Source: Zygnema circumcarinatum SAG 698-1b
Lineage: Eukaryota; Plantae; Zygnematophyceae
Reading direction: 5' to 3'
Assembly: GCA_037447605.1 (NCBI GenBank)
Contig: CM074818.1
Coordinates: 434,001 to 498,000 of the forward strand
DNA length: 64,000 nt
Shown: positions 11,435-17,406 of the stretch, piece after piece
How positions within the stretch are numbered: position 1 is the first letter of the stretch
Layout of the letters: every line of letters begins with the position of its first letter
Position numbers and translations under genes: made by a program
Notes under the pieces: generated by a model
Told to the model about the DNA's origin: nothing
Database searches by the model: none
The model's input: the letters and a program-made list of their open reading frames with translations, nothing else

Positions 11435-12830
11435 GAGGGAGAGAGAGAGAGTGAGGGAGTGACTTATGTTTCAATCTCTTCCTTCCCCTTCCTTCCGACC
11501 TTTGAGGGCTTTCCGTAACCCTGTTTGATTTTTTGGAGCCTCTGCAGGATAACATTTTGCCGCAGTTAATGAACACTGCTGGTTCATATGACGATCTTTT
11601 CAAGCGAGAAGTGGCGAAATATGATCCCATTTGTCAGCAGGTGGACCGCAATATTAAAGAGCAGGAGAAGCTCCTGCAGGAGATCAAAGTAAGCCCCTTA
11701 TCTCTTATAATACTTTTTTTCATTCACTGGAGATTACCTCCACTTCTGTTTAGCTTCCTGCTTTTCTTTCCCATCTCCTTTCCCTCGTTTGGCTGTTGCG
11801 TCCATCAATCTTCAGATAAACAAGGAGAAGAGAGGGAGAGTGACAGAGTGAGGGAGTGAGAGGGGAGGAGAGAGAGAGACAGAGATACATGCTTCAAGTT
11901 CTCCCTTCTCCTACCCTTCCTACCTTCAAGGGCTTTTCCTGATCGCATTTTTGGGACTTCCGATTTGACCTTATGGTGAATCCTGTCCTTCTCTGACATA
12001 GATAGTCAACTGGTCATTCCTTTTCATTAGTTCATCTGTATATATAGATGTATGCTGCCATATCCCATTGGATGTAATATAAGATCATGAACTTATGCTG
12101 CAGACAAGCTCCCGTCTAGGATCTTTAAAATGACCAGATTGGATCAATTAGGGTTCCTGAAGTCTTCAATATTTTGGGGTGTATGGAATGTTATAACAGA
12201 CACAAAGTGAAGCGTTTGCTGCTGCTTTCAACCTGCAAGAACATAACGGTGAGCTTTTCTTCAAGTCACCAAATCAAAGCTTTAGAATCCATCAATCTAA
12301 ACAATGTCCTTTTTTCGTTTTATCTTTCTAAATAGCAAGCAATAGCAAGTTTGGAGGGTCGGTTAAATGTGAAAAGTCTTATTGTCAGCGCATTGTTAAA
12401 TATGAGCATCCCTGACGGAGTAAGTAGATCTTCCCCCCTCTCCCTCTCTCTCTCCCTCTGACTTTGTCCAACTTGCTGCTTTCCTAGATTTTGAAATGTT
12501 CTTATAGATAGTCTTCTTTGGGCGTGATGTATTCAGCGGCTCGCGAGAAAGTTCTGAAGCAGATCACAGCTGCAGTAGCGAAGTACCGAGAAATTCGAGA
12601 GAACATGAATGAAGGCCTCAAGTTCTATGTCACACTTCAGGTGCGTTTTTTGGAATTCAGATGCTTACCATTCCTTGCCACTTCCTTTTGGCTCTTGCAA
12701 TTTTTTTCCTCATACAGTAAGAACTATGCATAGTTCAAACTCAGTATGAATAGAGGAATGTGTGAGAGTTCTTACATCTCTCCCCCCCTCCCCTCCCTCT
12801 CGCTCTCTCTTTCTCTCTTCCTCACGCTCG

Positions 12831-12876
<46 letters not shown>

Positions 12877-12892
12877 TCTTCACGCTCGCTTT

Positions 12893-12956
<64 letters not shown>

Positions 12957-13636
12957 TTCTCCCCCCCCCCTCGCGCACTCTCTCTCTCTCTCTCTCTCTC
13001 ACACTCTCACTCTCTTTCCCCCTCTCCCCCCCCTTGGCACAGGACGCCATCACCAACCTGAAGCAGCAGTGCGGCGACTATGTGATGACTCGCTCCATCC
13101 AGTGCCGCGAAATGATGGAGGACCTCCAAAGGTCCATGGCGGGTCTCTCTGTCGCCGACTCCCACTCCCAATCCCGCACCTACCCCCCTCCTCCCCAACC
13201 CTCTCCCGAACCTGGCCGGCAAGGCCCGGGCGGAATCTTTCAGCACTTCTCCATGTTCGCTCAGAGGAACAATCAGCCTCAGCCTCAGCCTCAGCCGCCT
13301 CCTCCCTCTGCCTCCCATCCTCCACAGCAGGTACACCCCCCCCCATACTATGCTTCCATGCCTGAGAACCCTCCCCCCTCCTACCAGCAGCAGCAGCAGC
13401 AGCAGGCTCCCCCTCCCGCCTATGCCTCTCACCCTCCTCAATATGCTCATAGTTCTTACTATGGGCAGCAGCCTCCTGCTGCTCCTCCTCAGGCTGGCGG
13501 CTATGGATCCTACACCTCTCCTCCCCCTCCTCCTCAGTACTACCAGGGGCCTCCGGGATCCATGCAGACCGCCCCCCCTAATGCGCAATACCAGGCGCCC
13601 TACCAGGGCCCAGGAGGATACTACAGGCAGGGATGA
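9176..13636 (+). CDS. ALIX: ALIX / BRO1-domain ESCRT-associated protein (BRO1, V domain, proline-rich tail)
   Basis: Exons 9176-10798, 11031-11120, 11274-11342, 11548-11688, 12200-12248, 12537-12640, 13043-13636, all phase-consistent. Motifs LDMYKPLRQYI, FVWFDAF, FEKAGVIFNLAA, MLAQAQECF, KDNILPQLM, EGLKFYVTLQDAITNLKQQCGDYVMTRSIQCREM, then a Pro/Gln/Tyr-rich C-terminus. Confidence 0.95.
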
Positions 13637-14963: not shown

Positions 14964-15266
14964 ATGGCGTCGCTTTGCCTCACAACTCACCTAAAAATTT
15001 TCACCCCATTTTCCAAAATGGGAGGACCATTTCCAAAATTTGTTTTGGAAAGAAAATTTTTTCGAAGTAGATCATTGAAGGTAGAATTTTCGTTGGCAGG
15101 AAATTTCTTTCAGAAATGGCCCAGATATGTATTTTTTAATGGGGTTGAAAGTAGGGGTTTTGGGGCGGTAAAGGCACAGGCTGGTGCTTGGAAGGAGGTG
15201 ACAGATGCTGCGTCAGGGAAGGTGGGCAGACCTGTCATGTATAGATCGCTTGAAAGGAAGGAGATG

Positions 15267-15302
<36 letters not shown>

Positions 15303-17406
15303 AAAAGAGAGAGAGAGAGGGGGGAGAAGAGAGGGGGTGAGAGGGAGGGAGAGAGCAATGGCGAGAGAGAGAGGGGGGGAGAGAGACCGGGGGGGGAGGG
15401 AGAGAGACGGGCGAGAGAGGGAGAGAGGGGGATCGAGAGAGGGGGGGAAGAGAGAGGGGCAAGAGAGGGAGAGAGGGGTGGAGAGGCAGAGAGGGGGGGA
15501 TGATGGAGAGCGAGAGAGGTGGAGAGAGAGAGGGGGGGATTGAGAGGCAGAGACAGGGGGAGAGAGAGTGGGGGAAGAGAGAGAGGGTGGAGAGAGAGAG
15601 AGGGGGCAAGAGGGAGAGAAGGGGGAGAGAGAGGTAGAGAGCTAGAGAGAGCGAGAGAGAGAGATAGATAACGAGAGGGAGGTTAAGAAGGAGAGTGATA
15701 GAGAAGGAGAGAAATGAGGGGAGGTGGGTTTGCAGGTTTTTTGATGTTTATGTCAAGTGGGCTTTTTTCCTCAAGCAATTTTTGAATTGGGTTTTACCCC
15801 TTCTCCCTCTCCATCTCCTCCCCCATCCCTCCTCCCTCTTCCCTTCTCTTTCTCCCTCTCCCTCCTCCTTTCTCCCTTTCCTCTCTCCCTCCCCCCCTCT
15901 CTCTCTCTGTTTCTCTCTCTCTCTCCCTCTCTCTCCTTCTATCAGCCCTATTATTGGAATACCGCCACCAATGAAACCTCCTGGACACTGCCCGAAAGTG
16001 ACTCTTCTTCCGATGCTCAGCAGACTCCCAATGTACGCCCCACTTTCGAAACCCTAAAATCCTAAAAAAATTGGAATCCTATCCTCGCCCCTCTCATCTT
16101 TATCTCTAATTACTTACATTTTGTGAACAAAAAAATCCTTTTGGCGTCCTCATCTACTGCTCTATGCGCAGACCCTTCGATTGAAGATAATCCCCTTTTA
16201 ACCCTTCATTCTTCTCTATACACCCGCTCCCCCTGCCCCCTATTATTTCTACTTTCATTCTTAACTTTAGTCTCCTTTTTTTAAATTTTTGGGAGTTAAG
16301 TTTGATTTTCACATTTTGCGCAGGTGCCGAATGAAGAGGTGCTTGCCACCCTCCTTTCTGCCGACAGCGATCGATTCGGCGATGTTGCTGACCGCTTCAG
16401 GTCGGCCTATTACTTTTTTACTTTTCTTCTTTTTAGGGTTTTTCACTTTGATTCTTAACTCGCAAAAACTCGGCAGTTGGTTGGTTGGTCGGGTTATCGG
16501 TTGATGACTAACTTTTAGGACTATATCTTCATAGAGTGTAGTAAGCACATTACATTGTATTCCTTCCTATTCATTATGAATGTGTGGCTAAAAAAACCAA
16601 CCCTTGTTTCATAACTATGTGAATGCGAATGTATGAAGACACAGTGAGCATATGCGCACATCTATGTATGTATCATGTATGTTCAAGCAGGATCAGCCAA
16701 CAAAAAAGGAAAGACGTACTTTTAACATTTGTTCGTTTTGTATCCATTGGGGGGGTCAGGCCTCAATGCTTTGAAGACGAATTTTCAGACTTTTTGAATG
16801 CAAAAATTGACAGCACAAGCGATGCGGGGGAGAGGTAAGCAAGCGCCCACTTTTCTTCCTTCAGAAGAATTCGGGTGCAGGGTTTTAGCTTTTTTTTCTG
16901 TGATACATTGAAACCTCTTTAAAGGAATAGGTACTGAAATAATATAATAGTAATTATTTCTTCTATCAATGGTGCGAGCATAGGGTCCAAGTTCAGTCCA
17001 AATCAACGGTTCGATTTGATGTTCGTCTCTGTTCAAATGAATAGGATGAATTATTTTTGTAAAGAAACTTTTGTCTGTTTCTTTAGAGAGGCTTGACTGA
17101 ACTGAGGTTTTGACTTTAGACTTATGTTTCGACTTTAGAGAGGTTTGATTGAACTGAGGTTTTGACTTTAGATTTAGTTCTTGACTTTAGATTTAATTTT
17201 TGACTTTAGAGAGGTTTGACTGAACTGAGGTTCTCACTTTGGACTTAGGTTTTGACTTTGGAGAGGTTTGACTGAACTGAGGGTTTGACTGAAGTTAGGA
17301 TTTGACTTTAGAGTGGTGTTATGCTGGAAATGGGAACAGGGAACGTCTTGAAAAGTTGAGAGCCCGACTAGCGAATCCGCTGCTGAAAAATCCTCCGCCA
17401 TATTGA
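14964..17406 (+). CDS. Unannotated 187-aa protein: predicted plastid transit peptide + WW domain + helical domain + C-terminal PPPY
   Basis: Exons 14964-15221, 15946-16032, 16324-16400, 16760-16834, 17340-17406 have GT-AG boundaries and matching phases (564 nt). Exons 1+2 join into [28 protein letters not shown], a textbook WW motif. The N-terminus is MASLCLTT..., S/T/K/R-rich, with a VKA/QA cleavage-like site. Confidence 0.8.
17083..17312 (+). repeat. Intronic minisatellite (about 50-bp unit ctttagagaggtttgactgaactgaggttttgactttagattta..., about 4 copies)
   Basis: Repeated gagaggtttgactgaactgagg and ttttgactttaga blocks in intron 4 of the WW gene. Confidence 0.85.

Follow-up and report, generated by a model that had tools for sequence, protein, structure and literature searches.

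A small WW-domain protein with a predicted organelle-targeting leader in Zygnema circumcarinatum and its relatives in the green lineage

Introduction

Classically, WW domains serve as adaptors in the cytosol and the nucleus. In class I WW domains, which bind PPxY motifs, a His residue after the YYxN motif builds the pocket for the ligand Tyr; class II/III domains of the Prp40/FBP11 type have a third aromatic residue after YY, which builds a second XP groove, bind peptides of the PPLP or Pro-Arg type and accept ligands with a basic residue near the PPP core. Prp40 proteins are nuclear splicing factors in which two WW domains are followed by FF domains. Here, we describe a gene located at positions 14964-17406 of the forward strand of a 64-kb stretch of contig CM074818.1 from Zygnema circumcarinatum SAG 698-1b; this whole stretch (64,000 nucleotides) is referred to as the window, and all coordinates are those of the window, on its forward strand. 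The 187-residue product consists of a leader, a single WW domain, a linker and a helical domain that ends in a proline-rich tail. On balance, we regard it as a probable member of an uncharacterised green-lineage family of small organelle-targeted, most likely stromal, two-module adaptors, for which we infer the compartment, the ligand class, any contact between tail and WW domain, and the partners.

The closest WW domains of solved structure are those of Prp40 and PRPF40A (FBP11), with which the window protein shares the signature Y-Y-aromatic-N-[TSP]-x-T...W..P, including the third aromatic residue and the lack of the class I His. Unlike Prp40, the window protein has one WW domain, carries a leader, and has a helical domain that is not detectably of the FF type. 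Green-algal WW regulators have been described in Chlamydomonas, where CBP1 and HCR1, proteins with CobW_C and WW domains, act as repressors of the CO2-concentrating mechanism (bioRxiv 10.64898/2026.09.01.748463). These regulators are nuclear or cytosolic, contain CobW/CobW_C domains and do not show the order leader, WW domain, helical domain and tail; thus, the WW domain is the only element that they have in common with the window protein.

Two database entries come much closer. Selaginella moellendorffii D8T1Q5 (SELMODRAFT_428095) and Klebsormidium nitens A0A1Y1I9R4 (KFL_002740080) have the same four-part order, are 45-48% identical to the window protein and share its intron positions and phases, while their tails differ (PPPWA, and PQPF with a 13-residue extension, respectively). 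Both are orthologues. The WW domain is a known one, and the orthologues were already present in UniProt: database names of the family members are limited to "hypothetical" or "WW domain-containing", and our literature search for a WW family of plastid type or the accessions of the orthologues found no paper, in agreement with the preliminary description of this locus, which had recognised no described family.

Gene structure and support from relatives

The preliminary description, made from the sequence alone, had proposed five exons coding for 187 residues, with a transit-peptide-like leader of about 72 residues, a WW domain spanning W76 to W98, a helical region and a terminal KNPPPY followed by a stop. 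Splicing of 14964-17406 gives precisely this product: the five joined exons form a 564-nucleotide open reading frame of 187 codons that ends in KNPPPY and a stop codon, and all four introns have canonical GT-AG borders. Two numbers had to be corrected, since 75 residues precede W76 and the second signature Trp is W99; the targeting type of the leader and the WW domain itself both stood. The five-exon gene, its WW domain, its helical region and its C-terminal tail are real.

Exon 1 (14964-15221) contains the start codon, the 75-residue leader and the first WW strand, W76 to K86 (15189-15221), and is followed by a GT donor at 15222; an in-frame stop lies 24 nucleotides 5' of the ATG. Intron 1 (15222-15945; 724 nucleotides, phase 0), in which a GA-rich block precedes a complementary TC-rich block, separates it from exon 2 (15946-16032), which encodes the remaining WW domain (15946-15993) and an acidic, Ser-rich linker (15994-16032). 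The helical domain is distributed over the last three exons. Its first helices are encoded by exon 3 (16324-16400; positions 3-33 of the family hidden Markov model, HMM), its middle helices, RPQCFEDEFSDFLNAKI..., by exon 4 (16760-16834; HMM positions 28-54), and its last helix, ERLEKLRARL, together with the tail and the stop codon, by exon 5 (17340-17406; HMM positions 52-75, E 2.6e-12). The tail, ANPLLKNPPPY, is located at 17371-17403, with PPPY at 17392-17403 and the stop codon at 17404-17406; the candidate WW ligand that it provides is the peptide RLANPLLKNPPPY. The family HMM matches exons 3, 4 and 5 in this order, as expected from the proposed helical region, and has no other match across the 64 kb, where the gene is single-copy.

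The gene model was compared with those of its relatives by mapping the annotated proteins EFJ09430.1 (Selaginella) and GAQ86169.1 (Klebsormidium) to their genomic loci (L007 and L008, respectively). Each of the four window introns occupies the same alignment position, in the same phase, in one or both orthologues. Intron 1, placed in phase 0 between SGK and [PV]YYWN (SGK|PYYWN in the window), and intron 4, in phase 2 inside the Arg/Lys that precedes the LEKL helix, are common to Selaginella and Klebsormidium; in addition, Klebsormidium shares intron 2 (phase 0), and Selaginella shares intron 3 (phase 2, inside the Arg that precedes PQCF). Additionally, three members (P0057, P0060 and P0155) come from contigs of approximately 0.9-1.5 kb with an unbroken coding sequence, and P0057 was found in five RNA-seq runs. 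These homologues, rather than a transcript of the species itself, suggest that this streptophyte alga has a functional nuclear gene at the locus, which we hold to be probable jointly with the overall reading.

No identical or near-identical protein was found in a collection of 5.8 billion proteins with either exon 1 alone or the helical region as the query, a result that fits an unannotated gene but falls short of proving it. Exon 1 alone returned no matches at all from this collection; the leader is not conserved, and the protein of its own genome is absent from the collection.

The family

A 72-residue query from the helical region retrieved four proteins of 112-123 residues, all of them with a WW domain. 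The profile of these four was searched against 1.84 billion representatives, and the best 150 matches, mostly multi-WW proteins, were considered; at least 13 single-stretch, near-full-length matches were present among the matches listed. The identified members are D8T1Q5 of S. moellendorffii, A0A1Y1I9R4 of K. nitens and two transcripts, one of Psilotum nudum and one from MMETSP; the others are algal metagenome or run-assembly sequences. The conserved family thus includes Chlorophyta, Klebsormidium, Zygnema, Selaginella and Psilotum and reaches from green algae to ferns. A metagenome scan provided two additional members (L009/L010 and L011), its remaining matches being generic WW proteins.

Every complete member shows the same four-part order, i.e., leader, WW domain, disordered linker, and a helical bundle of approximately 70 residues with the tail. 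The window protein has this order, the conserved C-terminus and the shared intron positions of the family. In the phylogenetic tree, the sequences form three groups: a streptophyte group that includes the window protein (support 81/86, moderate), a chlorophyte-type group (96/92) and a small third group. No seed-plant member was found in a word-indexed search of the collection, which includes NCBI and UniRef, nor among the best 150 profile matches, which suggests that the family was lost in seed plants.

The WW domain

The peptide encoded across the exon 1/exon 2 junction matches the Pfam WW model (PF00397) with 46.6 bits (E 3.5e-12), well above the gathering cut-off of 26.9. Its signature residues are W76, W99 and P102, with a Trp spacing within the 20-23 residues expected of the domain, the Pro three residues after the second Trp, and an aromatic cluster formed by Y88-Y89-W90. 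The same model is matched by 19 of the 21 family members. In the family alignment, the residues of the ligand groove (the second Tyr of YYW, the second Trp and the Pro) are nearly invariant, and almost every member has YYW, YFW or YWW as its aromatic triplet.

The position of the class I His is occupied by T92 in the window protein and by T, R, K, P, I or S in its relatives. The closest solved WW structures are the WW pair of yeast Prp40 (E 3.5e-12) and human PRPF40A (5e-8). The lack of the His, the third aromatic residue after YY, and Prp40 and PRPF40A as nearest solved structures together place the domain, as far as its sequence can tell, in the Prp40/FBP11-like class II/III rather than in the PPxY-reading class I. 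The preliminary description had noted the missing His and anticipated a specificity of this kind.

The WW-FF architecture of Prp40 was also considered for the window protein and was rejected, as the Pfam FF model (PF01846) gave no match and structures with the alpha1-alpha2-3_10-alpha3 fold of FF domains were absent from the top fold matches in the PDB. A weak match to Glyco_hyd_101C that recurred when the members were scanned against Pfam one by one lies below the cut-off and overlaps the WW strands.

The helical domain

The helical domain, of approximately 70 residues, lies 3' of a variable, low-complexity linker that is Pro-rich in several chlorophytes (e.g., PPPLP in P0014) and is predicted to be disordered, with a predicted local distance difference test score (pLDDT) below 50. 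As a proxy for AlphaFold modelling, we used the mature region of P0057, the closest homologue, with an alignment of 21 sequences; over 113 aligned columns of this region, P0057 and the window protein share 59% identity. In the model, a three-stranded WW domain is followed by the disordered linker and by a five- to six-helix bundle, and the mean pLDDT is 75. Modelled alone, the helical part reached a pLDDT of 84 and a predicted template modelling score (pTM) of 0.65.

A search of the AFDB clusters with this fold recovered the Klebsormidium orthologue and generic WW proteins, and nothing else, and the full model matched only WW domains in the PDB. The Foldseek comparison of the helical domain advocated in the preliminary description yielded no informative match in the PDB, where only generic helical matches were obtained (Z ≤5.9, Foldseek E >2), nor among the Swiss-Prot models, where PALE CRESS was absent from the matches. 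Likewise, the helical region gave only a sub-threshold match in Pfam (EAD9, E 0.12), and the Pfam scan of each family member produced no consistent match besides WW.

The shape search of the ESM Atlas was more productive. The helical domain was superimposed over approximately 72 residues with TM scores of 0.71-0.82 (root-mean-square deviation of 2.0-2.4 Å with the AlphaFold model as the query) on unnamed Chlorophyta clusters (298-330 residues), one unnamed Streptophyta cluster (207 residues), and Chloroflexota clusters. In the matched Chloroflexota clusters, 18-26% of the members carry the Pfam domain DUF8246 (PF26740), and one of these clusters is fused to CpXC. The result was the same with two queries from different predictors, the AlphaFold model and, independently, the Selaginella protein as modelled in the Atlas itself. 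The Atlas feature similarity to streptophyte DUF8246 clusters was 0.64-0.70, and feature scores below 0.9 serve only as leads. Based on these structural models, the fold of the helical domain appears to resemble that of DUF8246-type models, a consistent resemblance that leaves membership in PF26740 unproven. Unlike the window family, the DUF8246 clusters list no WW domain. Our search for papers on DUF8246 found none.

A link of the helical domain to PALE CRESS (PAC) finds no support in the Foldseek comparison: PAC does not appear among the Swiss-Prot Foldseek matches, and it is connected to the family solely by a weak Atlas feature score of 0.56.

A separate observation concerns a Cys where the third main helix begins. 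Of the seven streptophyte members, six have the motif RP[QE]CF, among them the window protein (16760-16775); Klebsormidium (RTRLF) and the chlorophytes (RDAAF) do not have this Cys, which may be redox-sensitive or structural and specific to the lineage.

The C-terminal tail

The most conserved stretch of the family is its final helix plus the tail, RERLEKLRARLANPL[LI][KR]xPPP-aromatic, with the consensus end RLANPLL[KR]xPPP-aromatic. The preliminary description had interpreted the tail as a PPxY ligand and had asked whether it is conserved together with the WW domain in orthologues. The PPPY sequence itself is restricted to the window protein and four other streptophyte sequences. In Selaginella, the tail is PPPW(A); in Klebsormidium, it is PQPF with an extension of 13 residues; in most chlorophytes, it is PPPF, with or without a following V or L; and in L011, it is PAPF(E). 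In three members, the tail is replaced by DDLS or EQVWG, and two of these members keep an intact WW domain. A PPxY motif is thus not conserved across the family. Nevertheless, a proline tail and the WW domain occur together in Chlorophyta and in Streptophyta, and this co-conservation is real at the level of a basic-x-P-x-P-aromatic motif at or near the C-terminus.

The conserved unit, helix plus RLANPLL[KR]xPPP-aromatic, exceeds PPPY and may be part of the helical domain rather than a dedicated ligand. A scan of bacterial and archaeal genomes with the tail motif found no relative.

The leader and the compartment

The predicted organelle-targeting leader, most likely for the plastid, occupies 14964-15188 and ends in V-K-A|Q. 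It contains 16% R+K and 4% D+E. Every complete family member has a leader of 20-140 residues that is unconserved in sequence, basic and nearly free of acidic residues and that stops between one and eight residues ahead of the first Trp of the WW domain; within exon 1, conservation is confined to the last 11 residues. The leaders often end in [VI]-x-[AC], which resembles a stromal processing site: V-K-A|Q in the window protein and I-S-A|S, V-R-C|C, V-K-C|S and V-C-A|A in others. Leaders of the Psilotum group (P0060, P0155 and P0156) are of the classic Ser/Pro-rich transit-peptide type, and those of the vascular-plant-type members Psilotum, P0060 and P0155 are free of acidic residues and start with MA-; the Selaginella leader, with 14% Ser/Thr, is lower in these residues than the Psilotum type. 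The composition of the leaders and the motifs at their junctions are compatible with plastid transit peptides throughout the family, and the stroma is the most likely predicted compartment of the window protein.

The first ATG (M1, 14964) has a T at -3. A second in-frame ATG at codon 19 (M19, 15018) lies in a better Kozak context, with A at -3 and G at +4, and the true leader may thus have 57 rather than 75 residues.

As an observation on a related locus, the chlorophyte metagenome contig that encodes P0001 has an open reading frame (L001, 2137-2439) approximately 1 kb downstream of the WW gene with a faint Pfam match to TIC20, the plastid import channel.

Other features of the locus

Intron 1 contains a GA-rich microsatellite block in its 5' part (15261-15668) and the complementary TC-rich block in its 3' part (15802-15940), which form inverted arms of up to 51 nucleotides with 88% complementarity and of approximately 70 nucleotides with 71-77%. 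These putative arms could pair in the pre-mRNA and draw both splice sites together or, in DNA, could adopt purine-pyrimidine structures of the H-DNA type. Much of intron 4 consists of a tandem array (17081-17317) with units of approximately 19, 52 and 71 nucleotides (GACTTTAGAGAGGTTTGACTGAACTGAGGTTTT-like) and 70-90% matches. Upstream of the gene, the last large open reading frame of the neighbour (12746-13636, forward strand) encodes a proline/glutamine-rich tail that contains PPPY and PPPSY; it lies approximately 1.3 kb from the WW gene, a nearness that is probably coincidental.

Discussion

In the reading that we consider probable on balance, removal of the leader would leave a mature protein of approximately 112 residues that starts directly with the Prp40/FBP11-type WW domain. 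With its YYW triplet and no His, this domain would read proline-rich peptides, and the flexible linker would join it to a compact domain of five to six helices with a DUF8246-like fold, whose last helix and RLANPLL[KR]xPPP-aromatic end would constitute the most conserved surface of the family. The window protein would most likely bridge or regulate partners through its WW and helical surfaces. Its own basic-Pro-Pro-Pro-aromatic tail would be a plausible ligand of the WW domain, either in cis, giving a closed state, or in trans, giving head-to-tail chains; it is a reasonable candidate because it lies at the opposite end of the mature chain from the WW domain, is connected to it through a flexible linker, and has a basic residue before PPP.

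Several observations weigh against this reading. For a green transit peptide, the window leader is unusually rich in Phe (16%) and poor in Ser/Thr (12%), and the chlorophyte leaders are ambiguous, a plastid and a mitochondrial presequence being equally possible. In the P0057 model, the arrangement of the WW domain relative to the helical part is not confident (pTM 0.43), and the tail is predicted with no higher confidence in the presence of the WW domain than in its absence. Our local Pfam copy, which may predate the DUF8246 model, gave no match to this domain with E-values up to 5-10. Finally, P0080 combines a PPHF tail with a degenerate WW domain, while PPP-aromatic has disappeared from P0038 and P0039, whose WW domain is intact, indicating that the WW domain and the tail are not strictly interdependent.

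Among the alternatives, the one that survives best is a tentative proposal in which the tail is integral to a DUF8246-type domain that has its own partner, the WW domain recruiting another proline-rich client. It is consistent with shape matches that extend to the last residues of the query (2-75) in green-lineage and Chloroflexota clusters lacking a WW domain, and with the feature similarity to streptophyte DUF8246 clusters. Additionally, part of one PALE CRESS cluster carries DUF8246. By analogy with PALE CRESS, the partner could possibly be RNA or the plastid ribosome; a passage of PMC8364240 that cites Meurer et al. 2017 states that PALE CRESS binds 23S rRNA. Nevertheless, the absence of PALE CRESS from the Foldseek matches in Swiss-Prot, the failure of the motif scan of bacterial and archaeal genomes to find a relative, and feature scores that are no more than leads all speak against this proposal.

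It is rather doubtful that the tail is a dedicated ligand of its own WW domain, making the protein an autoinhibited monomer or a head-to-tail polymer in the plastid. The two elements mark opposite ends of the mature chain as predicted, with a flexible linker between them, both are kept across members of Chlorophyta and Streptophyta, and a basic residue is located two positions before PPP, but the aromatic position can hold Y, F or W, the middle Pro is not constant either (PQPF, PAPF), and P0038 and P0039 retain an intact WW domain without the motif. Moreover, conservation extends over the whole last helix and ANPLL, beyond the needs of a WW ligand; the AlphaFold model shows no confident docking; and the Pro-rich linkers of several chlorophytes, such as that of P0014, offer alternative ligands in cis. 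A tail that belongs to a partner-binding surface of the helical domain, with a separate client for the WW domain, is at least as likely as a dedicated self-ligand. The more specific scenario of a chloroplast WW switch, in which a host-derived Prp40-type WW domain was sent to the stroma early in the history of the green lineage together with a DUF8246-type domain and took the PPP-aromatic end as its own ligand, seems unlikely to us.

Regarding the compartment, we find it improbable that the leader is a mitochondrial or dual-targeting signal rather than a plastid one. The Arg/Ala-rich chlorophyte leaders, in which position -2 or -3 relative to the start of the WW domain is Arg (...TTARA|W, ...ACRA|AW), and the low Ser/Thr content of the window leader would fit such a signal, but they are countered by the classic Ser/Pro-rich, acid-free leaders starting with MA- of Psilotum, P0060 and P0155, by the [VI]-x-[AC] sites of several leaders, and by the occurrence of the family only in photosynthetic green-lineage organisms. 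Least probable is a cytosolic or nuclear protein in which exon 1 is not translated as modelled, with M19 or another first exon providing the start: the restriction of conservation to the last 11 residues of exon 1 and the better Kozak context of M19 could be taken in its favour, but a leader is present in every complete homologue, including the three from contigs with an unbroken coding sequence, a start at M19 would still give a 57-residue leader, exon 1 must supply the first Trp of the WW domain, and the frame that starts at M1 is open.

If the chloroplast WW switch were true, the family would represent a self-closing or chain-forming adaptor that was retained all the way from chlorophytes to ferns but, it appears, not in seed plants. 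The seeming lack of seed-plant members may be the reason that the family has escaped study. Returning to the two-module adaptor that we favour, the family offers a handle on an uncharacterised DUF8246-like helical domain that recurs in green-lineage and bacterial proteins, and a conserved WW family behind an organelle leader would mean that signalling or assembly through proline motifs also reaches into plastids.

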